Shown here: positions 7,903-62,087 of the stretch, in pieces
Numbering within the stretch: position 1 is the stretch's first letter
Layout of the letters: each line of letters opens with the position of its first letter
Source: Laetmonice hystrix
Lineage: Eukaryota
NCBI GenBank assembly: GCA_965235115.1
Contig: OZ249441.1
Location: 33,790,001 to 33,854,000, forward strand
DNA: 64,000 nt
Direction of reading: 5' to 3'
The notes under the pieces: model-generated
The model's input: only the letters and a program-made list of their open reading frames with translations
What the model was told of the DNA's origin: nothing
Database searches by the model: none
Translations under genes and position numbers: made by a program

Positions 7903-10554
7903 TCACTGCACGCACACCTTCTTAACGTCATCGAATACCAGATTGGGAGGACAGGCCAAGTAGAACGCCTTGCAGCATGTGCATGGCTTGCCGCTGGAGA
8001 AGGAGCAGCCACATTGGATGAAATTGTTGGGTCGGGTCGGGTCGGCGTACAGTCCGGACGGGTTATCGTGACAGTTGCCATCACACGGGTCTGAAACACA
8101 AACATTATATCAAAGTTCCTCATCATTATTATGCTCTCTTTCATTGCCTTTCTATAGGCCTAGGCCTACTCTTTCCGTGGTGTGATATTTCAGCGCACAG
8201 CTGCCCGCGGGATTTATTCGAAATTTATATTATATCAGGAACGATGGGATTTGCATAAGTCCCCTGGGTATAGGTTAACATGCTGCAGGACTTTTATTTC
8301 AGACCCAAAGAATTCTAACAAAGCATCACTAACCATATGCAGGTTTAGGGGATGAGTTGTCTTGCAGAGTGTTCTTACTGTAATCGTCTTGAACCTCATA
8401 TTGTCGGTTCTCATCCTTGTAGTGTCGGCTCTCGTCCTTGTAGTGTCGGTTCTCGCCCTTGTACGGCCGGTTTCCATCCTTGTAGTGGCGGGTATCATCC
8501 TTGTAATGTCGGGCCTCATCCTTGTAGTGTCGGCTCTCATCCTTGTAGTGCCGGTTCTCACCCTTGAAGTGTCGGCTCTCATCCTTGTAGTGCCGGTTCT
8601 CACCCTTGAAGTGTCGGCTCTCATCCTTGTAGTGCCGGTTCTCACCCTTGAAGGGTCGGCTCTCATCCTTGTAGTGCCGGTTCTCACCCTTGAAGTGTCG
8701 GCTCTCATCCTTGTAGTGCCGGCTGCCATCCTTGTTCTGTCGGTTCTTATCCTTGTAGCGCCGGTCCTTTGACTCTGACATGTAGTTACTCTGACCGTAC
8801 GGTAGCATACTGTAGGCGTACCAGCCGGACCTAAGGTAGGGATAGCCCGGGTAACCGAAATACCTGCCATGGTAGGGACCGTAGTAATTCGCCCCATTGT
8901 TAGGTTTTACACGAGTCGGCGTCTCGGTGGTGTCCCCCTCCTCCTGAGAATCGTCCGGTGGCCCGTCAGTCGGCAGGTAGTCCTGGGTCTGCAGGTCCGA
9001 CCCGTCAGTCGGCAGGTAGTCCTGGGTCTGCAGGTCCGACCCGTCAGTCGACAGGTCGTTCTGGGTCTGCAGGGCCGACCCGTCCGAGTAGAGGGCAGGG
9101 GCGGGAGGACTCCCACACATTTGTTCGCTTTCGCCTAAAACAAAATTGTAGAAGACGTTAAACCTTTTACTTCTCTCACCGTTTTACGTTATCATGCTTT
9201 GGAAAAATAGGAAAGAGATTACGTCTACACTTACAATAGGATCTCTTTTTTTATCACATGACAATAAATTCAAAGGTCAACTCGACCTATGTAGCTGTTG
9301 TACGTACCGATTTGTCCGCCGTTACAGAGATGGCCCTCACAGAACCACCAGAGGGATTTGGCCGGTCCCTGGTATTTACAGTTGGTGTCTACGTTCACCA
9401 GCCAGGGCAAGTTTTTCATGTCAGCGCAGCCACGATAAACCACTAGGGAATTCACAATTATAGAATTAGGTATTAGAGCCGGTAGCAAGCCTCCCCTCGA
9501 AGCTGCACTAGCAAAAATTAAAATTTTCCGTGGAAATGGTACACTGCCCCCCCCCCCCCCCGTAAAATATTGGACAGGTAGCAGGATCAAATCGCTATCC
9601 TAATATTTCACTAGAGTGGTATCATCCTATAGAGTGCTCTAGTCCTCGGTTCAGAGCACTCTAGAGCGATTTCATCCTAGGATCAGAACACTCTAGAGTG
9701 ATTTCATCCTAGGATCAGAACACTCAAGAGTGAAATCATCCTAGGATCAGAACACTCTAGAGTGATTTCATCCTAGGTTCAGAACACTCTAGAGTGATTT
9801 CATCCTAGGTTCAGAACACTCTAGAGTGATTTCATCCTAGGTTCAGAACACTCTATAGTGATATCATCCTAGGTTCAGAACACTCTAGAGTGATTTCATC
9901 CTAGGATCAGAACACTCTAGAGTGATTTTGTCCTAGGTTCAGAACACTCTAGAGTGATTTTATACGGGGTAGTGATTTGATACTCATACACCGGACCCTG
10001 GACCTGCTTTAGTCTATTCCAAGTTGCCCTTGCACTTTCCACTTTATATGTCATGACATAAAAGGACCCTATACTTACATCCGTTGTCTTCCTTGCGTAT
10101 GAAGCAGCGTCCAGACTCACAAGGTCTCTGTGAGACGGCACTCCACTGTTCGTCGTCCTTGACCAGGCTACATCTCTGAAAGCCCACCTCAGCCACCGGC
10201 CCCGCCCAGCTTTTGTAGCCCTTGATGAAACCGGACGGAGCATAGTTACAGTCGTAACATTTGCTCCCTGCAGGATTTAAAGCAACATTAATTCTGATCC
10301 GATCACAGAGGAACAATGCCGGATGAAGCTAAATAAAAGATTAAACAAAAGTAACACTTGGGATTGGAGGGGGGGGGGGGAGATCACTAATGTTTGGGTT
10401 AAACAGAAATTGGCTTTATCCTATCAATTTAAACATTTGAATTCCAATAGTTTGTGAATTCGTTAAGTAAACAAAAATGACAACCTGGTATCCTCTGGTA
10501 TGTTTCTCTGGCCAATGCCGAAGTGGCCAGCATCAAAACTAGCATGACACTCAT
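7903..10554 (-). CDS. Secreted protein A (~460 aa): signal peptide + Ly6/uPAR-like 10-Cys domain + Tyr-rich and H(Y/F)K heptad repeats + variant chitin-binding type-2 domain
   Basis: Exons (minus) 10554-10485, 10267-10079, 9442-9308, 9134-8334, 8090-7903. All are GT-AG and phase 1, and they sum to 1383 nt with an open frame. Signal peptide MSVMLVLMLATSALA. Domain KCYDCNY..GFQRCSL..PCESGRCFIRK..NGLVYRGCAD..NC..WWFCEGHLCN..MCG. Last exon DPCDGNCHDNPSGLYADPTRPNNFIQCGCSFSSGKPCTCCKAFYLACPPNLVFDDVKKVCVQ*. The exon-3 donor could alternatively be 9287 (same phase). Confidence 0.85.
8404..8760 (-). repeat. Coding 21-nt tandem repeat: 17 heptads, consensus H-(Y/F)-K-(D/G)-E-(S/N)-R
   Basis: Counted in ORF 8329-9120 from RYKDKNR to HYKDENR. 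The central part alternates HYKDESR/HFKGENR (42-nt higher-order period). Confidence 0.95.
9578..9985 (+). mobile_element. Inverted-repeat-bounded element carrying a 32-bp tandem array (intron 2 of protein A)
   Basis: About 10 units of CTCTAGAGTGATTTCATCCTAGGTTCAGAACA, bounded by ATCAAATCGCTATCCC and GGGGTAGTGATTTGAT. A second copy lies inverted at 19248-19721. Confidence 0.75.
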
Positions 10555-10603
10555 CGTTGCGCCCAGTGAGTGGACTGTCCCCCTCAGATCATCCTGAGAG
10601 GTG

Positions 10604-10611
10604 TATTTAAA
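10604..10611 (-). promoter_or_regulatory. TATA-like box of protein A gene
   Basis: TTTAAATA on the minus strand ~50 nt upstream of the ATG, with an Inr-like CAGT about 30 nt downstream. Confidence 0.35.
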
Positions 10612-10863
10612 GTCTGAGAACATCTGTTGCCAGGTTTTGACGTCCCACGCTTGACCCGGGTCCAGCGGATGAACTTAACAACCGAAGGTAGACGTGACAC
10701 AAGTTTGGCACCGTCCGACCACCGGGGGAGGACACAACATCCAGGCAGCCGTTGCCCCCCCCCCCCCCCGAGGTACTCCGTGCTTGCGTCATGTTGTCGC
10801 ATTTCTCAATATAGCATCATAATACACGGTCACAAACGGGTGGTAGTCTATACTCCATAGATC

Positions 10864-11120
10864 CAGGGGCGGATCCAGGATTTTGGTAAAGGGGGGTGTT
10901 TAAGAGGGAGAATTTGCTTGGGGGGTTAGCATGGTCAATTTAGAAATTTCAATGGTGAAAAAAGACAAATTGGCTGCCGGGGGGGGTGTAAATAAAACAA
11001 AAACTTGTAACGAACTCAAATTTGAGCCCAGAGCAGAAGGGGCGGAAGACCGGTCACTACCGAGTCAGTTTGGTCAAAGTTATGGAAATAAAAAAAAACC
11101 CTCCCCCGGATCCGTCACTG
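10864..11120. mobile_element. MITE, CAGGGGCGGATCC family
   Basis: CAGGGGCGGATCC ... GGATCCGTCACTG inverted ends. Flanks AGATC / GGATC (5-bp TSD with one mismatch). Confidence 0.7.
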
Positions 11121-11221
11121 GGATCGGGATCATTATACAGGGGGTATTGGCTGAGAGTAATAGTTGCAGATCTTCTCTCAGGGTTCCGTGCATTTAGAAT
11201 CCATTCAAAGTTGAGCTTGAG

Positions 11222-12170
11222 AACCCAGCCAGCCAACCTGATGGGGGAGGACCCAGCCAGCCAACCTGATGGGGGAGGACCCAGCCAGCCAACCTGATGG
11301 GGGAGGAACCAGCCACCCAACCTGATGGGGAGGACCCAGCCACCCAACCTGATGGGGGAGGACCCAGCCACCCAACCTGATGGGGGAGGACCCAGCCACC
11401 CAACCTGATGGGGGAGGACCCAGCCAGCCAACCTGATGGGGGAGGACCCAGCCAGCCAACCTGATGGGGGAGGACCCAGCCAGCCAACCTGATGGGGGAG
11501 GACCCAGCCAGCCAACCTGATGGGGAGGACCCAGCCACCCAACCTGATGGGGGAGGACCCAGCCACCCAACCTGATGGGGGAGGACCCAGTCAGCCAACC
11601 TGATGGGGGAGGACCCAGCCACCCAACCTGATGGGGGAGGACCCAGCCACCCAACCTGATGGGGGGGGGGGGGGACCCAGCCACCCAACCTGATAGGGAG
11701 GACCCAGCTAGCCAACCTGATGGGGGAGGACCCAGCCAGCCAACCTGATGGAGGAGGAACCAGCCACCCAACCTGATGGGGGAGGAACCAGCCACCCAAC
11801 CTGATGGGGGAGGACCCAGCCACCCAACCTGATGGGGGAGGACCCAGCCAACCTGATGGGGGAGGACCCAGCCAGCCAACCTGATGGGGGAGGACCCAGC
11901 CAGCCAACCTGATGGGGGAAGACCCAGCCAGCCAACCTGATGGGGGAGGACCCAGCCACCCAACCTGATGGGGGAGGACCCAGCCACCCAACCTGATGGG
12001 GGGGGGGGGGGGACCCAGCCACCCAACCTGATAGGGAGGACCCAGCTAGCCAACCTGATGGGGGAGGACCCAGCCAGCCAACCTGATGGAGGAGGAACCA
12101 GCCACCCAACCTGATGGGGGAGGAACCAGCCACCCAACCTGATGGGAAGGACCCAGCCAGCCTGATGGGG
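11222..12170. repeat. 28-bp minisatellite, ~33 copies
   Basis: Unit ACCCAGCCA(G/C)CCAACCTGATGGGGGAGG, with variable G-runs. It explains the repetitive ORFs at 11057-12370. Confidence 0.95.
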
Positions 12171-12631
12171 GGGGGCACTAAATGATGTTTTACCTCACAC
12201 CTCTTGGGAGGGGGGGGGGGCTCCCCCTGTTCCGACAGAATGCCCCAAAAGGCTTCTTTCGGGCCTGTGCTAGTCAAGGGGAGAAAACGAATAAACCCCC
12301 GCCCCTCCTCCCCCCCCCCCCCCAAAAAAAAAGTCACATAGCTTAATCCGGTTTTACACACGATTAACACCTAGTTGCGCGGATCATGCCATACGTGTAA
12401 GGGAGCATGTTTGGGAGATTTGGATCATGAGTCACCCGTAACCATGGTAACAGACAGTCTGCCACATCAGTGTTTTGTTAACTACTGATGGAAGGGTCAC
12501 AGGCCAAGCTACCAGAGGTGTCACAGATGGCGCTGCAGTCGGAACCGTAGGCTGACCAAAGGCAGGGCGATCTGCCAATCACCTTCTATGACTCGTTAAA
12601 TGGTAGGAGGTATTAATTTTGATTTATTTTA

Positions 12632-12801
12632 NNNNNNNNNNNNNNNNNNNNNNNNNNNNNNNNNNNNNNNNNNNNNNNNNNNNNNNNNNNNNNNNNNNNN
12701 NNNNNNNNNNNNNNNNNNNNNNNNNNNNNNNNNNNNNNNNNNNNNNNNNNNNNNNNNNNNNNNNNNNNNNNNNNNNNNNNNNNNNNNNNNNNNNNNNNNN
12801 N
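12632..12801. other. Assembly gap
   Basis: Run of N. Confidence 1.
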
Positions 12802-13942
12802 AGACACTGTTTTCGTCATGTCGGCAACTATAACAAGTATGTATAAGGTCTTCTTCAGGGCAAAAAGATGGTTTTAGCAAAGATTACCGAAAAGTGCCCT
12901 GTTTCCTTACTAAAGAGTTCCTTACTAGAGTGTAGAAGAAGATACGATAATTCAAACTGAAAGAGTTAGTATTGAAAAAGTTTGAAGTTAGCTATTGTTG
13001 GCTTCACTATGCAGTCCTCGATCACTGAGGGCGGTGGGGTTGAAAATGAAACGTGAAATCTTACTTTAACAATATCAAACAATGTAAAATAAATCCCCCT
13101 GCACAAAGAATGTGTAAATTGAGATCCTAGGGTGGGGGATATTATAAAGATATACTATCAAAAAAGTAACCTATTCATTGTTACAATTATTATGCTCGCA
13201 CTTTATAGGATTTCAGTCCATTTAGGCTAGGCGCTTAAATATAATATTTGGACTGAGAAAACAGTGTCTTATTTTATAGCTCTTGTCTTAACCCAATCCG
13301 AATTATATCAAATAAATATGATTGAACGGGAAATGATGCCTGTTTTTCTTATCTTGTTGGCATGTATGTACATATGCGTAAACTGATTTAGCTTGTGGGC
13401 ACGAGTTTGTTATAGACTGACCGTATAAAACTGCGTTCGGTCCCGACCCTGAGCTGCCTTTTACTCTAAATCTGTTGAATTTTGAAAGGTTGCTCTCTTA
13501 CCCAACCCTATACCCAATATAATTCTATAACCTCTGCTGGAAAGATAACGTAAAGATGGGGTACCAACATCAAAGTTTATTCCAAAAGAAAATCCTCGAA
13601 ATTCTTTCATCAAGCGTGTACATGTACTTCCAAATATTATAAAGGAGTTCTTGAATGGTGAAATTGACAACGTCAATTTATATTAAAAACATCTATAAAT
13701 CATTCTTACCATCTCACTTAGTTTGTATGAGTTGATCGGTGAATATCTATTTAATCGCTATTTCCAGGTGAGGCAGAATCCACTATATATACATACATGT
13801 ATTATCATAAGTGTAGCATACATATGTTTCACATCGGTGGGGTGTATTCGTGGCATCTATACAGGCGTCACGACAATTCCATTTTTATGTTTTCTACACA
13901 ATGGCAATTCTCATAACATCGAAATCAAGATTTTAACTGGAT

Positions 13943-16900
13943 CTAATAATAATATTCATTGTCGGAGTCGAAGTCTATTGTCTTGTATTGTGGGCCGTTG
14001 ACCTGAGTGCCGCCCACCTGACTACACACCCCGGAGTAAACATCGAAGGTGGTCCCCCGTGGGCAGATCCGCTCGAACGGCTGGCAACACTCGCACGCCT
14101 GGCCGCGGTGGTGGCCTGACCCGCATTGGATGTAGTGATCGGCCTTGGTTGGGTGGGCGAACAGCATCTGACTGGACTGGCACTCCCTTGGGCACACGTC
14201 TGTAAAACGAAAAACGTCGGGACAATGATTTTGTTAACAAGTGAAAATAAACATTTTGAAGAAGAGCAACAGTTTGAATTGTTTCAATTATGAAATTCAC
14301 GTTTGGCCGTTTGCAAGAACCTTTGGTAAAGTTACGCCAGAGAGGGCGTTAAAAGTCTTGTAAAAACAGTGCAGTTGTGCTAAAATAGGGGCCATGGTTA
14401 TTGGGATCATTCATTGAAAGCTGGAAACTTTTGACTTTCTTGCAACGGGGAATAAATGACCAACCCACTGAATATCTACATATATGGCCTTGTAATCGGT
14501 CAGTTTTCGATATTGATCTAAGATATTTTAAAGTCATAATATTCTTTTGCATCGGCAGAGGGACTACCTCGCTTGCATTCCTAATCAAATGTCTTCCCCA
14601 TAAAAACAGTTATAAGGGAAAAATAATTTCTGCTTCACCTGGGCCAACATAGGAATCAATGCTATGGTCTGGTTGGTGAACGTTGTCCATGTTGAAATTA
14701 TCGTAGTAGGTTAGAAAATCCGCTTCATTCATTGGCTGATCCGGAGAGTTCCCCTCGGCTTGCACGTTGTATTCCGCGCCGTCTGCCTCTCCCGCTGACG
14801 TCATCGCGTCATCCCAACGTCCGTCGTCAATAACAACGTCATCTTTCACGTCATCGCTCGCCTGGAAGTCGTCTGTCGAGTAGAGGGGACTCTGGTAAGG
14901 TTCCTTGCCCTGAGGCAACGGTCCGTCTTGGTCTGAGGACGTGTAGGTGACCTGCTCGGGGACCCCCTCCAGGTCCACTTCGTCTTTGTTTTGGGGGTAC
15001 TTCGGATGTGTCTGGTAGTGAGGCTTCTGATAATAGCTCGAGATACCACCGCGGTAACCTCCTGTGTCCTTAGGGTGAAATTTGGGATGGGCGTAGGGAG
15101 ATTTCGGGTCGGCTTTCGGATGATGGGATTTCTGGGATTTGGCTGGTCTCTGATCGGACTTTGGTGGAGTGGTTTTTTTGGGATGGTATACCCCAGTAGA
15201 TTTGGGGTGATATTCCTTCGGATGGTGGTAATCGTTCTTAGGACTTGGCATGCTTTTTGACCCCTCCGCTTTGGCCGGCTTATGGGATTTAGGGTGGTAG
15301 TCGGGCATTTTATTCATTGTGGTGTCCTTGGGATGGCTGTTTCTTACCGTCGAGGTTTTAGGATGAAAGTCACTAGGCCCTTTCTGTGGATATCCTTTTG
15401 GGTGGGTGCCATGGTCTTGTGGCTTGTACACCTTTGGTTGGAAATAGACCACTCCTTTCGGCGGATTGTGTTTTGGGTGCTGCTGGTCTGTCGATTTGAC
15501 ATGGCTTTTTCCATGTTCTGGTTGGTGTTTCTTAGGGTGAAAGTTGTTCACCGTTTTGGGGTGTTGGTCGCCTTGGTCTTGCTGTTGGGTAGTTTTGGGA
15601 TGGTAACTACTTTTCCTTCCTTCCTCATTGTTAATGGTTTTCCCTTGGGGTTTATCAATCGACTTGGCGTGACTTGAGCTAGTTTTGCCCACTTTCTGGT
15701 CACTCGAGCCCTTGGGGTGGGGTAGTTGGTGAGTGTGCCAGTAGCCAGCACTGTAAGGCTGGGTGGTGTGTTGGTAATGGTCCGGGCCAGGCAACCATCT
15801 CCAAACCCAGAAGGGAGCGTGACCATATGGGTGTTGCTTCCCTGTCGCTGCGGTGTGTCCCTTTGGGTTATAGTCGACTGGAACATGGCTCTTGGACTGA
15901 TCTGATTTGGGGTGTCCTTTCTTGCCCACCGTTCGCGTGGAGCGAGCCGCTGAGGCCTGAGATTTAGAGACGACGCCATACACCGTTTCTCCCTGGGCGT
16001 GTACGTTATGAGGTTCTGGATTGCTTGTTTCTGGTACCGGGTCTGGAGCCTGATACACGACTCGTGATTTGGGATGGTCCCCACGAAGCACCTCCATCTC
16101 GTCCAGGCTGTGGTCATGGTAGGGCGGTTCAGGGAGTCCTTTAGATCCGACAGATTTCCCTGAGTTTGGCGCAGGTTCTTGGTGCTCGGAGAGACCAAGG
16201 GAACCACAGCGATTGTTGTCAGTCAAGGATCCGTCATTGCAAAGATGGCCGTCACAGAACCACCAGATGGAGCCAGTGGTTTCTTGGCTGGAACAGTTGC
16301 TGTAGGTGTCGACGCCCCATTGAAGGTTCCAATGATCAGCACAGCCGCGGTAGATTTCTAGTTTGGATGAAAAGAAAATGATATCAGTTTTATACATCAA
16401 CAAGAAAGGTCTGAGGAATGAGACGTTACCTATAGAACGGAGTTAGGGAACAAGCAGGCCTAACTAGTCGTAATTCTACAAATAGTAAGCAGTTGCCCTT
16501 TTAATATCAACAGCAGGATTATGTAACTGGGGCCCTAGATGGGGGGAATAGAAATATGACAGATGCCCAGCGAAACTCGGTCTGTCCCTTTATTTGTGAA
16601 TATTAAATTCAAGCACACGGTGGGAATATCTAGTGTTCTTATTAAAACAATTTGGGTTTAACTTACGGCCATTTGGGTCCATCCGAATGAAACACTTTCC
16701 ATATTCACATGTCAACTTATTGATGAAGTAAGCATCATCTGGTTCCGTCAGGGAGCATCTCTTGAAGCCCCCGTAACCGTCCTTTGCTGTGACGTAGTGA
16801 CAGTCGTAACAACTCGCCCCTGCGTGAAAACAAATCCAAAGATTTACTTCATATAACTTTACTTATAGTTGGCGGGTGTAAACAGTAAAACATTTATAAC

Positions 16901-17153
16901 GGAGAAGCAAATGTTCTTAGAACTTCGTACACTCCACCGACGTGCATTTTGAGCGGGTCACTGCGTCAGTATAGGTTAAGGAATTCCAAACGTCGAACTG
17001 GCTGATACCGGTTGTCAAGGATATTCACTATGAGGAGAACATACAAACACCAAAAATCAAACAAAATCACTAACCTTTGTCGCCGTTTGTCCATCCACAG
17101 GCAGCGCCGAAAATAACGCTGAGCTTGATTAACCAAAGCATCACTGTTCTCAT
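13943..17153 (-). CDS. Secreted protein B (~735 aa): signal peptide + Ly6/uPAR-like 10-Cys domain + HPK-rich basic region + acidic region + variant chitin-binding type-2 domain
   Basis: Exons (minus) 17153-17075, 16819-16667, 16357-14639, 14199-13943. All are GT-AG and phase 1, summing to 2208 nt open. Signal peptide MRTVMLWLIKLSVIFGAACG. Domain SCYDCHY..GFKRCSL..TCEYGKCFIRM..NGQIYRGCAD..NC..WWFCDGHLCN..RCG. C-terminus DVCPRECQSSQMLFAHPTKADHYIQCGSGHHRGQACECCQPFERICPRGTTFDVYSGVC. The exon-3 donor (GTGAAG) is weak, but it is in phase and mirrors paralog A. Confidence 0.85.
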
Positions 17154-17254
17154 TCAGGCATTGTAACCGCAGCGAATAAATTTAATTCTTTGCTCAAGGT
17201 CTGACGAACGAAGATGGAGCACCGCACAGTGAGTTCATCCCAAACTGTAGAGTC

Positions 17255-17263
17255 TTTTATTAA
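17255..17263 (-). promoter_or_regulatory. TATA-like box of protein B gene
   Basis: TAATAAAAG on the minus strand, with an Inr-like TCACT about 30 nt downstream and the ATG ~100 nt downstream. Confidence 0.4.
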
Positions 17264-18429
17264 ACTACACCGGACGGTTCCAGGACCCCCAGGTGCCGTC
17301 ACGTGTCGGGGGTTGACGATCGGAGGTTATTTTTGGCGCCGAGCCACGTGATGGGCCGGTGCCGCCAACCAAACAATCAGCGAATTCCGGTCCCCCGCGC
17401 CAGATGGCGACACTGGCGTAAACACTGCTGTCACAGATGACCGCGGCGTTCGCTAATTACGTCGACGTGTGACGTTTCATAATCGAATGACGCACCTGTA
17501 AGGACTGTCGCTGACCAGGACAAGGCGACGAGTTTAAAAAAAAAACACGATCAAAGGACCAGGGTGTGGGAAACGTGGAGGTAACAGAGTATGTTAGGCC
17601 TAGAATTTTGTCTGGTACGACGGGGGATGGTTGGGCGACTGCTACCAAATCTCAACACTGACAGAGAAGTAGACGCGACCATTTAAACACCCGCTGTGTT
17701 CCAAAAGGAGGTTGGCAGAGCGCTTGGCACCATCTGCAATCAGCCTCTCTCACGTACGGCCTGTCGCTTTTAAAAAACCGTATCATGCCAATTGAAATTA
17801 ATACTAAAATTAAAAGTTGAGAGAAGACACCAAAATGATTGAATCAAATAAACTTTTATTTATATTAGAGCAAGATGAAGAACCTACGTAACATAAAACG
17901 CACATACATGTATACTATAGCCTATAGATTATAGTGTATACTCTAAAATGATGACTTCAATGTTTAAGAGCAGATCGAACACACTGTGTCATGGGAATGG
18001 TTTCTGTATAATAGTGCACACAGTGCACAGTAACATGTCAAATAACGAAGTCCTCCCTTAGAACAGTCATAATATATGACAGCTCAACTGTTCGAGGTAT
18101 GTCTCTGTATGGGCGAACTGTCTATCAGTTATATAGGCCTACTCTTTATACTGTAGGCAAAACTTAATATCATTCGTAGTAAAGATACCACCGGGTTGAT
18201 CGTGTAAGTATCATTATACCAACCGTGCAAGGCCTTAACTTATCGTCGGAGTGCCAATAATAGTGAAGGGCTATCATAACTCGGCAGTTCTAATATAATA
18301 GGAAGACGCTTGGGTGTTCGGCGCCCTTCTGCCTTTATATAGAGACAGACGTACAGCGCCCCTCTTCCAGTCAATGGCCGAGAGTTTAGGTGGGTTTTTT
18401 TCTTTGGGGGGGGGGGGAGAGACGGCCCC

Positions 18430-21400
18430 CTATACCGGAAGCTCCTTCTTCATCAAACTTTTACTGCTGACCACATCGTCTTCCCCGCTGTCCTCTGTGG
18501 GAACTTCACTCACGTTCCAGGAACAGTTGCTGGAACAAACGGAATAATGTATTAGGAACGTGTTCGTTGTCTGCACAAAGAATATTATTTCATCGCCCTA
18601 TTGTTTCAAACATTTTCAGATGAAAAGAAAAAAACCTATCAAACCCTTTTTCTAAGTAGACTCTATCGGGAACATTGGGCAGAAACACTATTATCAGTTT
18701 TTTGACAACCATAAAAAGTTTGAAAGATGAAGGAGCCATACGATAAAGGCCTCTATATGACTATAACACTTTGGCGATTCGCTTCCTAACTTAGCAGGAC
18801 TTCCTGTCCCAAATAACAAAGGATGTGTTGCCACGTAAAGATTAAAATATTAACGGTTGATACAGAAAACGGAGTTAGAACTAAAGCTTAAACAAGAACT
18901 AAAGTTTTGGAAAACCGGTTTCTGGCCTACCCTTTCATGTTCTCGACGTCGTCTACGGTCAATGGCAGCGGTCGTCCGCGGGTCTCGGGTAGAAAGAGGG
19001 AGGTGACCCCGGCGGTGAGGGCCAACACGCCCAGTATACAGATCGGGATCAGTGGATCATACCTCGCCTGGAACCGAGCCAAACTCACTCTTCATGGAAG
19101 AACTGGATTCAACAACGGACAACGCACTACTCTGAGGTACACGGGGTGTGTCTTGGGAGGTCATGCAAGTAACTATTTAACTTGGATGGATAGTCTCTCC
19201 GTACAAGATGTAAATTCCGTAACAAAATGTAAAGTTCATGTAAAGTCCTGAACCTAGGATGAAATCACTCTTGAGTGTTGTGAACCGAGGACTAGAGCAC
19301 TCTAACAGTTCTGATTCTAGGATGAAATCACTCTAGAGTATTGCGAACCTCGGATGAAAATCACTCTAGAGTATTGTGAACCTAGGATGAAATCACTCTA
19401 GAGTGATCTGAACCTAGGATGAAATCACTCTAGAGTGTTGTGAACCTAGGATGAAATCACTCTAGAGTGTTGTGAACCTAGGATGAAATCACTCTAGAGT
19501 GTTGTGAACCTAGGATGAAATCACTTTAGAGTGTTCTGAACCTAGGACAAAGTCACTCTAGAGTGTTCTGAACCTAGGATAAAATCACTCTGTGTTCTGA
19601 ACCTAGGATGAAATCACTCTAGAGTGTTCTGAACCTAGGATGAAATCACTCTAGAGTGTTCTGATCCTAGGATGATATCACTCTAGAGTGAAAAGTTAGG
19701 GTAGTGATTTGATCCTGCTACACCTGCCTTTAATAAAGACAGGCCGATGCAACACTTAAAGTATGTAGGCCTACATTCACCTGCATGAATGTATAACACC
19801 TATACTGGGACTCTATCTTACCAGCTGTCCAATGTACGGCGCGATAACTCCTCCCATTCGGCCTGTCGTTGAGCAGATACCCAGTGTAACCTGTCGGAGT
19901 CCTGTGGGAAACAACTCAACCGTGAAGACGTAAGCAGCCGCGAACCCACCGGAGATAGTCAGCTTTCCGATCATGGCCAACGCTGTCCTCACTGTCTTCA
20001 AATCTGATACGGAGAATGTGAAGCAAATTCAGGTGTTTAAAAAAAATCTATTTATCGTAACCATTCAAGACCTTAAAAAGCGACGAGGCAAAGGTAACTC
20101 TTCTCGGGGGAGGGGGGGGGGGTCTGCTCACCCAGAAATAATTTTTAATTCTGGACGTCAAATCGTGCATTCTGAGGGTGAAATTTGACACTTTTAACTC
20201 AGGACAAAAATAGTCATTTAAATGTTGCAAAAAGAACAACTGCTTTTGCATTCTCCCTGTTATCTAGCTTTTACTTCATTTAGTACAGTAAAGGCTGATA
20301 AAAGTATTCGATGAGTTCTGGGAGGGTTAATACGGATAGCTTAGGTCTGAAATCTAAGTTTAATCGTAAATACGATGGCAGACAGAAAATCAATTGGAAC
20401 GAAAAGAAATGTCCGTAGTCAACATGATACCACAGAACATCCCGACAGGGGGCGCCCTACGATCGCAGCGCCATGCTGTGGTGAGAATGTGAAACCATCG
20501 AAACTCTTGCCGCCACTGTTAGGCCTATCTCTAGGTGAAATCGACGGGGTTTTATTCCATTCGGCCCTGAAGTAAAGCTATAACCTCAGAAGGGCGTTAA
20601 GGAAATCAAATCTTTGTTACACTTTGACCTCTCGTTTTGAAACAGCCTTCAGCATGATCACCACCAGGTGGGGCTGCGATCGAAACGTACCCGGAGAAGA
20701 GCATCCGAAGCAATGAGAGTGCTCCCTCCGACAGTCAGTAAACCTACACGCTCTGTCTAGGATGTGCTCCCTCTGACAGTCAGTAAACCTACACGCTCTG
20801 TCTAGGATGTACTCCCTCCGACAGTCAGTAAACCTACACGCCATGTCTAGGATGTGCTCCCTCCGACAGTCAGTAAACCTACACGCTCTGTCTAGGATGT
20901 GCTCCCTCTGACAGTCAGTAAACCTACACGCTGTGTCTAGGATGTACTCCCTCCGACAGTCAGTAAACCTACACGCCATGTCTAGGATGTGCTCCCTCTG
21001 ACAGTCAGTAAACCTACACGCTCTGTCTAGGATGTGCTCCCTCTGACAGTCAGTAAACCTACACACTCTGTCTAGGATGTACTCCCTCCGACAGTCAGTA
21101 AACCTACACGCCATGTCTAGGATGTGCTCCCTCTGACAGTCAGTAAACCTACACGCTCTGTCTAGGATGTGCTCCCTCTGACAGTCAGTAAACCTACACG
21201 CCATGTCTAGGATGTGCTCCCTCCGACAGTCAGTAAACCTACACGCTCTGTCTAGGATACTTACGATCGGGGACGAAGGCTGTAGCCAGGAGGACCAGTC
21301 CAGACCAGACGAGGAAGGATGACATCGTTCCCCGCCGTCCTGGACGCCTGCTCATGAGTACCTGGGTCAGGAAGTAGGCTGGCAGTTCCACGGCGCCCAT

Positions 21401-27400: not shown

Positions 27401-30400
27401 ATATACCAAAACATCATAACATGTGCTTTTAATAACACATGGCCTACATGTAGGCCTATGTGCAATCACAATTAGGCCCCAAAAAGAACATTCCCGGTTT
27501 CTGGTCTGAGGCACATTTCAAAAGTGGTGCGGGTTTTTTTAAACATTATTTTTTTGGCGACAGCTGGCTAAAATGGTAAGCCTCATAAGAATTACCATGT
27601 AAATTGAACTCATAAACAAGGACCATGACCTTTCGTATCATCGCTTTGAATACAACACACTTCCGTTGCAGTGTTGGTTAGTTTCAAGCCTTACCGCTAG
27701 GTGGCAGCACAATTCACAGTCATCCAAGGTGAGGGCAAGAAAAAAAAACACTCAATGCACGGCATCTGACCAGAAACCGGGATTTTGTTTTCCTGGTCTT
27801 ATGTGGAAGTTTGCTTGATCTTACCGGTCGGATAAAACTCCTCCTGACATCACGCCAACTAATGTTCCGGCCAGGAAGGCCGAGTTCACAGTAGCAATCA
27901 GCCATCGTCGGTGGCACACGAGATCCCACTGAGGCAAGANNNNNNNNNNNNNNNNNNNNNNNNNNNNNNNNNNNNNNNNNNNNNNNNNNNNNNNNNNNNN
28001 NNNNNNNNNNNNNNNNNNNNNNNNNNNNNNNNNNNNNNNNNNNNNNNNNNNNNNNNNNNNNNNNNNNNNNNNNNNNNNNNNNNNNNNNNNNNNNNNNNNN
28101 NNNNNNNNNNNNNNNNNNNNNNNNNNNNNNNNNNNNNNNNNNNNNNNNNNNNNNNNNNNNNNNNNNNNNNNNNNNNNNNNNNNNNNNNNNNNNNNNNNNN
28201 NNNNNNNNNNNNNNNNNNNNNNNNNNNNNNNNNNNNNNNNNNNNNNNNNNNNNNNNNNNNNNNNNNNNNNNNNNNNNNNNNNNNNNNNNNNNNNNNNNNN
28301 NNNNNNNNNNNNNNNNNNNNNNNNNNNNNNNNNNNNNNNNNNNNNNNNNNNNNNNNNNNNNNNNNNNNNNNNNNNNNNNNNNNNNNNNNNNNNNNNNNNN
28401 NNNNNNNNNNNNNNNNNNNNNNNNNNNNNNNNNNNNNNNNNNNNNNNNNNNNNNNNNNNNNNNNNNNNNNNNNNNNNNNNNNNNNNNNNNNNNNNNNNNN
28501 NNNNNNNNNNNNNNNNNNNNNNNNNNNNNNNNNNNNNNNNNNNNNNNNNNNNNNNNNNNNNNTATAGATCTATAAGCCCACGATTGTCGTATGTGTTGAC
28601 AGAACCACATATGCGTGAGATTCCAAGTAAAGGCTGACATGTGTATATATAATTACATTAGTCTGTATGTTGTGTTGGTCTACTTCACAAGTACATGCCA
28701 AAAACATGAACTGGAAAATTCCATGGTTGATTACTCCAACACAAACTTTCATAGTATAGGCCAGGTCAATACTAAAACTATAATTCAGGAGGTTGCGTGC
28801 GTGTAAAATATCATTTCAATAGCACGCATGCGGGCTGTGTGATCCACTGAGAAGAAATATATTTTATGGGTGCCGATGCCTGCAGTCATTTCTCACATAA
28901 TCGGAGACGTCGGGTGGTCATAGGAAATTCAGGAAATTCATAGGAAATTCAGCAAACGTCAAAACACTATGAATTTGTGCAATTCATTGGCCAGCAATAG
29001 TTTTTTTTAAAAAAACGTTGGAAAGGGTTTTTCCAAGGGTGGATGATGTCTACAATATTTATTTTTCTATATTAAATACGTAAAGTGGCACAAGTCCAGA
29101 GCAGCACATCAAGTTGCGTCAACCTGCCAACGCTCTTGGATGAACCGAATCGATCTTCCCATCGACCCTGCGGATGTGTTTGCGAGTTCGTGTCTGTGAG
29201 ATTATGAACGCCGCGTTCAGCCCTCAGTGGGTAATTTTATTGATCATAGAGCATAATTTATATACGTGGATGGTCTCCGTGAAAGTAGCTCTAACCACGA
29301 ACCACGATTAGCACGATACGTTGGCAGCACTACGTCACGGTTGCTGATTGCGGGGGAGGGGGTGGTGGGGGTCAGACAAGGTCTAGCGCTTGGTGATGGC
29401 ACAGACATATCAAATGTTAGTAGGCAGTAAACCGCTGTGAACCCTTGCAAAGACTTCCAGGACAACATCTAGAAGGATGACTTTTTGATCCATCTGTCGC
29501 GTCTTTGCTCTGTTTCCAGTGGGGACCTAAGTGGATTGTAATCCCCGCTCCCTCCCCTACAACCCGGGCAGTGTTCAGGGGCGGATTTAGGGGGGGGGCG
29601 AGGGGGCCGCGCCCCCCTTTCGTCAGGGTATACCAATCAGAAAAAAGGCAAAATGTTGTTGTTTGCAACTGTAAAAGCACAGGAAATTTCAGGAAATGCC
29701 ATTTCAGAGACTCTAGATGTTCAAAATTGTCTGGGGGAATGCCCTCGGACCCCCTACCAGGGCTCGGCCCCCTTTAATTCCAACCGCCCCCCCCCCCTTT
29801 CCAAAATCCTGGATCCGCCCCTGGTGTTATGAAAATAGCATGGAGGCAGCCTATATATGCGCCGATGCTATACCCAAAGCGCTAGACATTCCATATTCTT
29901 ATGTTTCCAAAGGTCACCATTTCTCCTAGCAACCAGAGTTCCCTGACACGGAGTATAACTAACCCCAAGAAACGTTACTGATGGTAAAGGGCTCAGATCG
30001 CTCCACGCACCTGCATGGACGCTACAGATGTTCTATTTTCTCTCTGGCCACGCCCATCTTGAAATGACGGCCAAGAAATGACAGGTACAAAGTCCAAGAT
30101 CTGCAGAACCTTAAATGGGCCTCTTTGTTCAGACTGTTATTTCTTTATTATTTTACATCATGCTTCATGTATAGTTCATGATGCTGCAGTTAGGAAGACA
30201 TTCCTCTGTCCTGTCCGGCTTTCATGAACTCTATTTCAAGCTAGTCAGGTTCCCATTCAATTTTTACGCCCCAAATAGGCCTATATATCTTCCTATTTGG
30301 TATCTAACGCATGAAATTATCATTGAATTAAATGTGGCATAGAGCCTATGAACCATGGTCGCAGGCCACCTATGCAGTTTTTATAATGTAGGGTATGTTT

Positions 30401-36348: not shown

Positions 36349-39300
36349 TCAGAATTCACTATTGAGAAGACCTGCCTGCCATATGTTATAAAGTCTCCTT
36401 AACAATAACAAAACAATAGCCAGTCCCAGCAGGGCCATGAACAGTATGGCAATGGGGTTTTCACGGTTTGGGGTGTTTGGTGCTGGAATTTCTGCACTGC
36501 CGAATGATGCTGGCGATGAAGTAGGAGGTGTGGTTGTCATAGACGTGGCAGTGCCAGTCCTTTGCCGGAGCCCCGTTGTTGTGGTGTTGGTTTGTGAGAT
36601 GGTGGTGGTTCCGGCCGCAGCGGTCGCGGACGACGTGGGAGCACTGGTTGTCACGGAGGGTGCGGCGGTTGGTGCCGATGGTGATGAAGAAGTCGTGGCT
36701 CCTGTTGAGGATGGTACGGAGGGTTGTGATGACGACGCAGACAGACCTGATGCAGCATTACCTCGACTCTCCTGGTTTCTGTTTGGGGTGCTTCTCGTTG
36801 CTTCATCACTTCTGGGTGTTGACGCGGAGGACGTTGTAGGAACTGATGACGGTGCTGTCGATTGCTCTGGTCTTGACGTGGATACTGGTGCGGCTGGAGG
36901 TACAGTCCTGTAGGGAGACGTAAGGCCAGGTCCTACACCTGGTCCTGCACCTGGTCCTGCACCTGGTCCTGCACCTGGTCCTGCACCTGGTCCTGCACCT
37001 GGTCCTGCACCTGGTCCTGCACCTGGTCCTGCACCTGGTCCTGCACCTGGTCCTGCACCTGGTCCTGCACCTGGTCCTGCACCTGGTCCTGCACCTGGTC
37101 CTGCACCTGGTCCTGCACCTGGTCCTGCACCTGGTCCTGCACCTGGTCCTGCACCTGGTCCTGCACCTGGTCCTGCACCTGGTCCTGCACCTGGTCCTGC
37201 ACCTGGTCCTGCACCTGGTCCTGCACCTGGTCCTGCACCTGGTCCTGCACCTGGTCCTGCACCTGGTCCTGCACCTGGTCCTGCACCTGGTCCTGCACCT
37301 GGTCCTGCACCTGGTCCTGCACCTGGTCCTGCACCTGGTCCTGCACCTGGTCCTGCACCTGGTCCTGCACCTGGTCCTGCACCTGGTCCTGCACCTGGTC
37401 CTGCAGCAGGACTTGCCCCTGCTGACTGGGCAGCTCGTGCGGCCATCATCATCATCATCATTTGTTGGTTCATCATCATTGGATTAAAGAAGGGGGGCCA
37501 CACCCCAGAGCCTGGCGACATGGGGGACCCTGCCGGGTTAGGGGACATAGTCCTCGGGGGCATCGCCCCGGGCCAGAACGGGTTCATCGGTAGCTGAGCA
37601 CCGACGGCGTTCCCATTAGTCATGCCCGGCATCACTCCTCCTGGGGGCATCATCCCTGGTGGCATCATGGGAAAACGTCCTGTGAAGAGCTGTGGAGAGA
37701 ATGGTGGGAATGGGGGCATGGTGGGAGCAGCTGGGGAGGCTGCACCACCACTTGTAGGGGGTACACCACCAGGCTGAGGTACACTTGCTGATGGACCCGC
37801 AGGTGTGGCTGCTGCCGACGCTGAAGGGGAAGGTCCTTGGGCGTCGCCATTTTTTTCTTTTCCTTTGTCCTTTTCCTTCTCTCCCTGTGAACGAAATATA
37901 AATAATATTATAATAGATAAGTGTCATGTCCATGTATTTTCTAATCAAAAGAGTAAACCTCCAAAATGGGCGGTGAGGTGGCGCCCCCTGGTGATGGCAG
38001 ACTGAAGCAGTGAGGGACTGTAAAGTACGGAAACAAAAGCGCCACCTATGGGCTGCAACGGCAGTCCCCCATATCATGTTCGGTTTATTACATTATCTGT
38101 TCATTCATAAAAAAAAATTGTCAATTTTCTTTAAAATTTTCTAGGATATATCCTGCAATACATGGTCTAAGTGCAAAGGAAGAAAGTAAAGAACAAGAGC
38201 TTGTGAATGACTGAGAGACTGAAATTGCTGAATTTAAATTCTTTACTTTTCCACTAGGGGGCGCCACATACTGCTGACGGTTTGAAAAATTAATTATGCC
38301 TGATCCAAAGTCCATTGCAGCAGATGTTACCAAACCTCCACAGTTAAACTAGCACAATAAGATTAAATTTTAACATCTATATAACTCCGAGAATCAGAGT
38401 GGGAAACCAATATTAGGCCTACAGGATTCAGTTCATACCAATTAATTTTGTTTTTATGGGATTCCCAGGTTTACAACACGTACCTGGAAATTAATTTGTG
38501 AGGCGAGTTCCTTGGCCTCTTGACTTGTGGCTTTTGACGCCTCTGTGACTGGTTTCAGGATGGTCCGCACACTGCCACATTCTGGGCATTTCCAGTCTAG
38601 AGACCTGTAACATAACCATATACTTTTAATTTTCATACATTACAACAAAAATCAAATTTTGCACCAAATACCAAATTACCAATTATTGGCAATATTGAGT
38701 GTTTTAACAATCAAGGCACTAGACCATTCCACATGTCTGTACCGAACTTGTTTTATTATTTTTGATTTAATTTTTTTTTCTTTCACCTTCTGAAATTATA
38801 ACCAGTTTGCGTGCCACCAAGATATTTTAGAGAATAAGGTATGGAATACTAAAATGTGAAAGAAAACAACTAACTTTTTAGCAAGCATCTTGCGTTCCTC
38901 GCTGGTGTAATCCAGGGATCCAATAGCACCATTTCCATGTGTTGGCATGAATCCAATGATCGCAAGAAGAGCTGTCCGTACTGCAAGGAAAGTACTTCTT
39001 TTTTTAGTTTCACTTGAAAACTGCTCAGAGTATATTTGTGACCAAGTCCTTAAAGATATTTTCCTTCCAGATTAGCATAGAATTTATACAGATCAAGTTA
39101 TCAAAGTCTACATGAAATTCAATTTTTTCTGTTGTTGATAACTTTTGAACAGCAAGGTCAGATCCATTGACTCTCATGGCAATTAATTTACATTTCGATA
39201 TTTAGAAATCTGGTTCATCAAATAGTAAAATTTAAATTGGAACTTACTTGACCAAGAAGGCTGCCATGACTCTGGATGATGACCTGAGATGCTGAGACAG

Positions 39301-55801: not shown

Positions 55802-56130
55802 NNNNNNNNNNNNNNNNNNNNNNNNNNNNNNNNNNNNNNNNNNNNNNNNNNNNNNNNNNNNNNNNNNNNNNNNNNNNNNNNNNNNNNNNNNNNNNNNNNN
55901 NNNNNNNNNNNNNNNNNNNNNNNNNNNNNNNNNNNNNNNNNNNNNNNNNNNNNNNNNNNNNNNNNNNNNNNNNNNNNNNNNNNNNNNNNNNNNNNNNNNN
56001 NNNNNNNNNNNNNNNNNNNNNNNNNNNNNNNNNNNNNNNNNNNNNNNNNNNNNNNNNNNNNNNNNNNNNNNNNNNNNNNNNNNNNNNNNNNNNNNNNNNN
56101 NNNNNNNNNNNNNNNNNNNNNNNNNNNNNT
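55802..56130. other. Assembly gap next to a (GA/GACA)n microsatellite
   Basis: Run of N preceded by AGAGAGACAGACAAAGAGAGAGAC. A (TA)n tract lies at ~55496-55522. Confidence 1.
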
Positions 56131-61217: not shown

Positions 61218-62087
61218 CTACCCCTCACAGAACCAGTCGACGAACTGTGTAAGGTCGTCACCGTCGTCCGCCTGGTCGTACGTATCATAGCCAGGGTCAG
61301 GCGACATGTCGGACCGTGATCCCGGTGATCCCATCGACTGGGACGGCGACATGGGCGACAAGGGCGGGGAGAAGGGACCGGCTGGCCGGGCTGGGACGGC
61401 CGGAGGGTCGGCGCTGCCGGCGCTGTGTAACGACGACACCGAGGAGAGAGGCGACGGAACCATCGGCGGCCGACCCCCGGCGCCGTTATAGGCCCGGAGA
61501 CCTGCGCCTGCACCGCCCCTCTTCATCCCTCCCCGGCTGGGACCTCCCACGGCCTGCAGGACGTCTGACTCACCCTCCTCGTCCTGGCTGTCCAGGATCT
61601 GCTGCAGGTGGTTGATGTAACGGATGGCCGATCTCAAGGTCTCAACCTTACTCATCTTCTTGTTCTTGGCGGCACATGGGATGTGGTTACGGAGCGTGGC
61701 GAACGTCGAGTTGATGTGCTTCACTCGGTTACGCTCGCGTTCGTTGCGCCTGGCCACCGCTGTCGGGTGTGTCTTGTAGCCGAGTTTTTCTGTCAGATCC
61801 ACTCGTCGCTTACAGCGGAGGATTTCAGCCTGGTCGCCGCGGAACTTCTTGGCTGGCAAAACTGGCATCGTTGACGATCCGCCGCGGTATGGCGACACCT
61901 GCCCGCTGCAGGTCATGCCAAGATAAAAGTTCTGATGGTCAGCGTTGGAGGGTGACATTTGCTGTGTCGCCACTACCATCTTTTGTGGGCTGTGTTGGTT
62001 CACACACATGGCTGGCATTCCGTAGAGGGATTCAGAATATGGCTGGCTGAACCCGTAGTTCTCCACCATTGCATGTGTCTGCATCAT
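61218..62087 (-). CDS. ASCL: Achaete-scute family proneural bHLH transcription factor (ASCa/ASH type), 289 aa, intronless CDS
   Basis: EILRCKRR motif, then [51 protein letters not shown], and the acidic C-terminal motif [10 protein letters not shown] typical of achaete-scute proteins. Confidence 0.96.

Follow-up and report, generated by a model that had tools for sequence, protein, structure and literature searches.

Within a 64,000-nucleotide stretch of the Laetmonice hystrix genome (assembly GCA_965235115.1, contig OZ249441.1, positions 33,790,001 to 33,854,000 of the forward strand; hereafter the window), two adjacent minus-strand genes, g1 and g2, encode proteins with a predicted Ly6/uPAR-type three-finger (LU) domain at one end and a predicted CBM14 chitin-binding domain at the other. 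Together with a third paralogue, g3, they probably belong to an uncharacterised, mainly annelid, lophotrochozoan family of secreted extracellular-matrix proteins that help to build or organise a chitin-based hard part. The parts of these proteins are well known, whereas the combination of LU with CBM14, and the divergent LU subfamily that takes part in it, appear to be undescribed.

Two adjacent genes share a domain layout and splice pattern

We derived the models of g1 and g2 from six-frame translation and inspection of splice sites (Table 1). The initial annotation had described two adjacent minus-strand genes of the same layout, and this observation is confirmed: both genes are in place with clean splice models, and in each encoded protein a signal-peptide-like leader is followed by a Cys-rich N-domain, which a long block of low complexity separates from a Cys-rich C-domain. 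All seven introns of the pair are of the GT..AG type and in phase 1. Three intron positions are common to the two genes, namely after the leader, within the N-domain after "..NG" and ahead of the C-domain. An additional intron of g1, directly 3' of the N-domain, has no counterpart in g2, where the second half of the LU domain and the low-complexity block form a single open frame of 572 codons. A few codons past the donors at 8334 and 14639, the frame runs into stops at about 8329 and 14610, respectively. Both proteins carry a hydrophobic N-terminal leader and neither has a hydrophobic C-terminus; both look secreted. An in-frame ATG at 10623, upstream of the modelled start of g1, may be the true start instead.

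When the spliced models were compared by BLASTP, the N-terminal regions of g1 and g2 aligned at E 5e-30 (36% identity over 190 columns, about 45% inside the domain) and the C-domains at E 2e-11, and nothing in the middles was alignable. The earlier claim that the folded domains are homologous and the middles are not is thus upheld, and the motifs quoted for it (CYDCxY, CFIR, YRGCAD, WWFCxGHLCN, IQCG, CxCC and CP..FD) are all present. In tblastn searches of the whole window, pieces of g1 and g2 matched only these two loci.

The N-domain is a divergent member of the three-finger superfamily

Judging from profile comparison and the predicted fold of a homologue, the N-domain is a member of the three-finger/LU superfamily that represents a divergent, unnamed subfamily. 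The fold was tested on homologue P0003, whose LU domain is 45% identical to that of g1, rather than on the window's own domain. In the AlphaFold2 model of P0003, built from a 44-row alignment (A4), residues 30–135 have a predicted local distance difference test (pLDDT) score of about 90. An unbiased structure scan with this model returned three-finger or CBM14 folds for all of its top 46 matches, with Z scores of 4–6.2 for the three-finger folds (short neurotoxin, 6.2; GPIHBP1, 6.1; Lypd6b, 5.9). The LU part matches three-finger toxins, uPAR, CD59, Lynx1, Lypd6b, GPIHBP1, C4.4A, TEX101 and TGF-beta-receptor ectodomains, with a Foldseek probability of about 1 at E of about 1e-2. The best fold match in Swiss-Prot is Drosophila Retroactive (Rtv; E 4.8e-4), and Lypd1, qvr and short neurotoxins are matched as well. 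QVR is the top ESM Atlas cluster for the fold, and the AFDB cluster match A0A1S3IL96 aligned over both LU and CBM14 (E 1.6e-8).

The profile comparisons place the domain close to the QVR type. Aligned by hhalign against domains that pass the Pfam QVR model, the family LU alignment, which includes the spliced models from the window, reached a probability of 99.1% (E 9e-19, 72 columns). Sister-clade proteins found with a window-derived profile pass QVR at 29–40 bits, and the window-derived half-domain profile matches loci of the same genome that are also matched by PF17064. Scanned across the genome, none of the Pfam models PF00021, PF17064 and PF24602 matched the g1 and g2 loci, though QVR genes are present elsewhere in the genome. 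A PDB sequence search with the LU half-domain profile returned nothing.

The initial annotation had assigned the N-domain to the LU type. The fold of P0003, the hhalign score, the opening CxxC and the closing C-x4-CN bear this out; the canonical Cys framework and the Pfam cut-off do not. The ten-Cys framework is absent: the family has WWFC-x4-CN where the sister clade has the canonical WCFC-x4-CN, so that the terminal pair has lost its first Cys to Trp, and an extra conserved Cys follows 7–11 residues after the CN (seen at 9308–9442 and 16224–16357, and in alignments A1 and A4). This pattern suggests a re-paired disulfide in a variant LU framework. A GPI-anchored (glycosylphosphatidylinositol-anchored) Ly6 protein was considered and rejected, as neither g1 nor g2 has a C-terminal hydrophobic tail.

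The C-domain is of the CBM14 type

Profile scores and homologue modelling indicate that the C-domain of g1 and g2 is a CBM14 domain, for which chitin binding is predicted; CBM14 domains bind chitin. The same assignment, made in the initial annotation, survives on two grounds. The last exons of g1 and g2 score 22.4 and 26.3 bits against Pfam CBM_14 (PF01607), above the cut-off of 22.1, and homologues P0051 and P0037 reach 27.7 and 36.7 bits. In the P0003 model, residues 180–247 (59% identical to the g1 domain) have pLDDT values of 81–95 and match Avr4 (Z 7.5), EHEP (6.5), Der p 23 (6.1), Blo t 12 (5.6) and the CBM14 of chitotriosidase (4.9), as well as tachycitin, with a Foldseek probability of 1.0. 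The Pfam match spans positions 1–45 of the 53 in the profile. Eight Cys residues are invariant across the three paralogues (CxxxC, IQC, CxCC, CP and C), compared with six in canonical CBM14.

The fold matches of the two ends also bring up a reading in which g1, g2 and g3 are soluble defence or recognition proteins, a tachycitin-like chitin lectin or antimicrobial fused to a toxin-like three-finger domain and directed against fungi, chitinous parasites or prey. Tachycitin and the three-finger toxins of snakes and centipedes are indeed among the matches, but they reflect shared folds only, and the long Tyr/His/Lys blocks have no resemblance to an effector. The age of the three paralogue lineages and the conservation of their orthologues, described below, favor a housekeeping structural role over an arms-race gene. 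We regard a defence function as very unlikely.

The family is conserved across annelids, with a sister form in Lingula

By sequence comparison, the family is conserved across annelids and has a sister form in the brachiopod Lingula. Six-frame searches of the genome found only one further close member, g3 (G000:C12:8810357-8813271, plus strand), which lies on another chromosome and has the same N- and C-domains joined by about 20 residues. The first exon and signal peptide of g3 were not located; its C-terminal tail, ..GYKYGFE, is common to the transcript-derived P0021 of another species. A search of 1.84 billion representatives with profile A1, which covers the second half of the N-domain, yielded 63 proteins at E<=1e-3, of which 46 reached E<=1e-10. 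Many of these matches are exon-sized fragments on unannotated eukaryotic contigs.

Full-length proteins with the same domain order are Capitella teleta ELU11957.1 (CAPTEDRAFT_216761), at least 12 proteins of Owenia fusiformis (including CAH1773026.1), Paralvinella palmiformis KAK2154660.1 (701 residues, with a linker of about 490) and the transcript-derived P0003 and P0021. In the domains, the annelid homologues have 35–59% identity to g1, g2 and g3. The Capitella, Owenia and Paralvinella proteins share with the window a signal peptide, the variant LU domain (YRGCA..WWFC..CN plus the trailing Cys), a linker and a CBM14 of the CxCC type, whereas their linkers are unrelated in sequence and vary in length between about 20 and about 500 residues. 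P0003 is encoded by one uninterrupted open reading frame on a 1164-nt cDNA-like contig of SRR2014689; LU, linker and CBM14 thus lie on one mRNA in another species.

More distant relatives include Lingula anatina XP_013400288.1 and Owenia CAH1788342.1, each with two LU/QVR domains and a CBM14, as well as proteins of gastropods and octopus that have a pair of LU domains. The Lingula and Owenia proteins resemble those of the window in combining LU and CBM14 in one secreted chain, and their LU domains are homologous to those of g1 and g2. They form, however, a sister clade in which both LU domains have the canonical WCFC..CN ten-Cys framework and pass Pfam QVR, and their CBM14 is canonical (about 41 bits), unlike that of g1 and g2. 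A word-indexed protein search with region 1–60 of g2 exon 3 returned nothing, the collection containing no protein of the window at a matching length, and later word-indexed protein searches added few family members. All homologues carry database names of the kind "uncharacterized", "unnamed" or "Chitin-binding type-2 domain-containing".

The half-domain tree, which has few columns and in which only the starred forks are trustworthy, holds g1, g2 and g3 in a 64-row clade apart from a QVR-type clade. Within it, g2 groups with P0002, P0083 and P0008 (99/80), g3 groups with P0021 and P0015, and g1 lies near P0013, P0003 and P0006. As each of the three groups with sequences from different species, they represent old paralogue lineages, and a recent local duplication of the tandem pair was rejected on the same ground.

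In Owenia the family is strongly expanded, to at least 12 genes on several chromosomes (P0030, P0064-P0068, P0033, P0043, P0096, P0097, P0001 and P0052), some of which encode a pair of LU domains, a His-rich tail (25% His) and no CBM14. QVR-type Ly6 exon clusters occur in the same genome as g1 and g2 (G000 C1:65951906-65957569, C11:13289247-13294866, C12:10224986-10240817 and C12:26133823-26155734), and an array of about nine weak half-domain matches lies at C21:10415880-10429870. Genomic Pfam matches to QVR break near profile position 41–47, which suggests a mid-domain intron like that of g1, g2 and g3.

The initial annotation had proposed a new family with an unrecognised architecture. No paper was found that describes an LU-CBM14 family, including a tubeworm tube proteome paper and a spiralian secretory-cell preprint, and none of six accessions and identifiers of the Capitella, Lingula and Paralvinella homologues occurred in the papers searched. 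To that extent the proposal stands; the architecture itself is already public in the Capitella, Owenia and Paralvinella proteins and, in its two-LU form, in Lingula and Owenia. A 2026 survey of invertebrate LU architectures gives only "LU" and "receptor kinase" for annelids and brachiopods, so that LU with CBM14 was missed among their types, and it never mentions chitin (PMC13719153).

Read contigs join the low-complexity exon of g2 to its CBM14 exon

Run X4 comes from the same sample as the genome reads and is RNA-like, no run being recorded as RNA. It holds about a quarter of the words of each gene, and its read contigs were placed on 13800–17300, that is, on the g2 region only. A 984-nt contig joins 14639 to 14199, which is exactly the predicted last intron of g2; the 439 nt skipped begin and end with CT..AC on the plus strand, or GT..AG on the minus strand. 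This spliced contig extends beyond 13800, and the joint was not found in the DNA run X1. Another contig, 16207–16356, has an edge within 1 nt of the predicted start of g2 exon 3 at 16357, and a third, 17074–17218, breaks at the exon 1 donor (exon end 17075) and carries the 5' untranslated region to at least 17218. Contig coverage is also present over 14639–15064 in exon 3, and no X4 contig in 13800–17300 falls within the g2 introns. The joined exons in the X4 contig show that g2 is expressed, with its low-complexity exon spliced onto the one that encodes CBM14. The initial annotation had held that transcripts run on to the last exon, and for g2 the same contig shows that they do so rather than stop at 14610.

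These data bear on a further explanation, in which the architecture is an artefact of annotation: the LU, low-complexity and CBM14 exons would come from different transcripts, or the middles would be repeats that do not code for protein. In favor of it, g1 has no read support, X4 contigs having been placed on g2 only; the heptads of g1 derive from a young 21/42-nt tandem repeat; and the X4 contigs leave the middle of g2 exon 3 uncovered. It is nevertheless extremely improbable. The spliced X4 contig links the low-complexity and CBM14 exons of g2, the LU half and low-complexity block of g2 share the 572-codon frame, the cDNA-like contig of the other species holds all three parts in one frame, and the splice phases of g1 and g2 all match.

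The assembly gap between the genes (Table 1) is intergenic, so the continuity and frame of g1 and g2 are unaffected; disruption of a gene by this N run was considered and rejected for that reason. More than 800 nt separate the gap from the 3' end of g2 as transcribed in the contigs, and no exon-like similarity was found beside the gap.

The linker is a variable, charge-segregated module

From its sequence in the paralogues and homologues, the linker is a fast-evolving, optional module, rich in Tyr, His, Lys and Pro, with segregated charge. In g1 an acidic part of 74 residues (net charge -17) contains three 13-residue repeats (DNA 8962–9084), a Tyr/Gly-rich stretch is 23% Tyr, and 15 strict heptads of the form R-H-Y/F-K-D/G-E-S/N are encoded by the 21/42-nt tandem repeat (17.3 copies, 8402–8765). 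In g2 a basic, His/Pro/Lys/Tyr-rich block of 413 residues (isoelectric point 9.7, 41 His, 13% Pro, 12% Lys) is followed by an acidic block of 114 residues (net charge -26). The tripeptide HPK occurs 18 times in g2, versus 0.67±0.79 expected from 5000 shuffles, and no DNA tandem repeat was found behind it. The linkers of homologues are unrelated in sequence and have similar Tyr/Pro/Lys/His-rich repeats, such as PQPKSY, ESPQPIKPSY and runs of His (Owenia P0001; P0002); in some homologues (Owenia P0033 and P0030) the low-complexity block is placed after the CBM14. The linker in the P0003 model has pLDDT below 50 and is predicted to be disordered.

The initial annotation had listed a long middle in the layout of both proteins. 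Across the family it is optional: in g3 and many homologues it is replaced by about 20–45 residues, and the long linker is therefore not essential to the core function of the family.

Linker composition also bears on a reading of these proteins as peritrophin-like components of a gut peritrophic matrix or mucus layer. CBM14 domains with low-complexity linkers are the classic layout of peritrophins. The linkers of the window, however, are not of the Ser/Thr/Pro mucin-like kind (11% Tyr in g1; 8% His and 10% Lys in g2; Ser+Thr about 15%), and peritrophins usually have several CBM14 domains and no LU domain. A gut-matrix role is accordingly unlikely in our judgement. The narrower idea of a mucin-type peritrophin linker was rejected, the composition being Tyr/His/Lys/Pro-rich and not Ser/Thr-rich.

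Comparison with chitin-matrix and hard-tissue proteins

Arthropod peritrophins, CPAP1 and CPAP3/Obstructor are secreted chitin-matrix proteins that combine peritrophin-A domains with low-complexity spacers. They differ from the present family in having no LU domain and a canonical six-Cys CBM14, often in one to many copies. Disordered proteins rich in His, Tyr, Lys and Pro, such as DgCBP and DgHBP of the squid beak, Nvjp-1 of the Nereis jaw and the mussel foot proteins of the byssus, coacervate, coordinate metals or become cross-linked in hard tissues based on chitin or protein. g1 and g2 seem to share the compositional logic of these proteins, without sequence homology. In the squid beak the chitin-binding and His-rich functions reside on separate proteins, whereas g1 and g2 hold both in one chain and add the LU domain.

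For the LU end the closest comparison is Rtv, an insect Ly6-type three-finger protein required for chitin organisation, in which aromatic loop residues have been proposed to touch chitin (PMC3561106). The three-finger domain in a chitin matrix is the common element; Rtv differs as a single domain of about 15 kDa with a C-terminal hydrophobic or GPI-type end and without CBM14 or a low-complexity block, and its relationship to the family is shown at the superfamily level only.

Rtv also suggests a reading in which g1, g2 and g3 are not structural proteins but factors that organise or chaperone chitin. The three-finger domain would order fibrils or escort a matrix protein, CBM14 would replace the membrane anchorage of Rtv, and the linker would be a spacer. 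Rtv is the best fold match in Swiss-Prot and promotes both Knickkopf trafficking and chitin organisation (PMC3561106), and the short-linker form represented by g3 and P0021 is the conserved core of the family. The Rtv match is, however, only marginally above those of other Ly6 proteins and toxins, and the recurrence of long, biased linkers in several lineages suggests that the linkers do material work. We consider this role doubtful and retain that of a structural matrix component as the probable one.

A working model for a chitin-matrix function

A structural matrix protein of this kind might act as follows. The CBM14 end would dock the protein onto chitin fibrils, and the three-finger end would provide a second binding surface, either for chitin, as proposed for Rtv, or for a partner protein. 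Where a long Tyr/His/Lys/Pro linker with acidic and basic stretches is present, it could confer cohesion by condensation driven by charge or pH, by His-metal coordination or by Tyr/DOPA-type (3,4-dihydroxyphenylalanine) cross-links. In combination, these parts would glue and harden a chitin composite.

As to the structure served, chaetae are our leading guess, albeit a tentative one that falls somewhat short of an even chance, on the ground that Capitella, Owenia, Paralvinella and Lingula have this chitin structure in common; the distribution is weak evidence. A tube, a jaw or the lining of the foregut is possible. A more ambitious version of the model, to which we give little credence, takes LU-CBM14 as the lophotrochozoan counterpart of the Retroactive/Knickkopf/Obstructor toolkit. 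Both ends would grip chitin, the LU domain through aromatic loops and CBM14 in its classical manner, so as to cross-bridge fibrils; where the linker is long, it would be a pH-switchable block polyampholyte of His, Tyr and Lys that condenses and cures among the beta-chitin fibrils. The family would then supply a main matrix protein of annelid and brachiopod chaetae and a molecular character linking them.

Several observations weigh against a matrix function of the whole family or against the assignments that lead to it. Pfam found no match to any LU model in the LU exon halves of g1 and g2, and close homologues stay below threshold (DUF7622 20–25 bits versus 28.2; QVR 24.6 versus 27.3). The margin of the g1 and g2 C-domains over the CBM_14 cut-off is small, their eight-Cys pattern has CxCC instead of following the canonical six, and a model of g2's own CBM14, built from a three-row alignment, has a pLDDT of 61 and insignificant Foldseek matches, with Avr4 on top. 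At the transcript level, 15087–16139 of g2 is without X4 contig coverage, and the splicing of g1 is deduced from sequence logic and homologues, read support being confined to g2. Finally, the long linker is missing from g3 and many homologues. The biomaterial role proposed for these proteins (chitin anchoring together with a cross-linking or coacervating block) is plausible and, like the choice of chitinous structure, purely inferential.

Little is known at the molecular level of the protein matrix in annelid and brachiopod chaetae or in other chitin composites of lophotrochozoans, and the family is a testable candidate for a component of it, its function so far having been inferred from domains only. 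For bio-inspired chitin materials, the interest lies in a compact design: one chain combines a chitin anchor, a three-finger module of the type that insects require to organise chitin and, in some members, a block that would condense or cross-link. The family is present in annelids that branch early (Owenia) as well as in derived ones and has a sister form in Lingula, a distribution that could bear on the homology of chaetae and other spiralian hard parts.

Features of the window

Table 1. Coordinates of g1, g2 and the gap between them (window positions; exon boundaries of whole genes in order of transcription).
Feature	Position	Strand	Description
g1	10554-10485, 10267-10079, 9442-9308, 9134-8334, 8090-7903	minus	coding sequence 1383 nt, 460 residues, 5 exons
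g1 exon 1	10485..10554	minus	start codon and hydrophobic signal-peptide-like leader; ends at phase-1 donor
g1 exon 2	10079..10267	minus	LU-like domain, first half, CYDCNY to CFIRKEDNG
g1 exon 3	9308..9442	minus	LU-like domain, second half, YRGCAD to WWFCEGHLCN
g1 exon 4	8334..9134	minus	low-complexity block of 266 residues, including the conserved extra Cys
g1 exon 5	7903..8090	minus	predicted CBM14 (peritrophin-A type) domain with CxCC, then stop codon
Assembly gap (N run)	12632..12801		intergenic, between g1 start codon (10554) and g2 stop (13943)
g2	17153-17075, 16819-16667, 16357-14639, 14199-13943	minus	coding sequence 2208 nt, 735 residues, 4 exons
g2 exon 1	17075..17153	minus	start codon and signal-peptide-like leader
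g2 exon 2	16667..16819	minus	LU-like domain, first half
g2 exon 3	14639..16357	minus	LU-like domain, second half (16224-16357), then low-complexity block of 527 residues, no intron between
g2 exon 4	13943..14199	minus	predicted CBM14 domain, 25-residue tail and stop codon; 3' untranslated region extends below 13800

A 28-bp satellite occupies intergenic positions 11219–12159 (33.5 copies, 91% match) and accounts for long, GC-rich, non-genic open reading frames in several frames. Intron 2 of g1 holds a 32-nt tandem repeat at 9643–9960 (9.9 copies, 93% match). Further N runs of the window are at 27940–28562 and 55802–56129.

Elsewhere in the window, a single-exon open reading frame of 289 codons on the minus strand (61218–62087) encodes a basic helix-loop-helix domain (Pfam HLH, E 6.3e-20) and looks like an achaete-scute-type transcription factor. 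A 456-residue open reading frame at 36349–37719, also on the minus strand, combines a very long (AGPG)n run with tracts rich in Ser, Thr and Pro and with a hydrophobic segment at the C-terminus; no Pfam model matched it, and it may be an exon of a mucin-like membrane protein. On the same strand, the open reading frame at 20617–21204 consists of about 12 copies of a 15-residue repeat (ACRFTDCQREHILD-like), with sub-threshold Pfam matches only.

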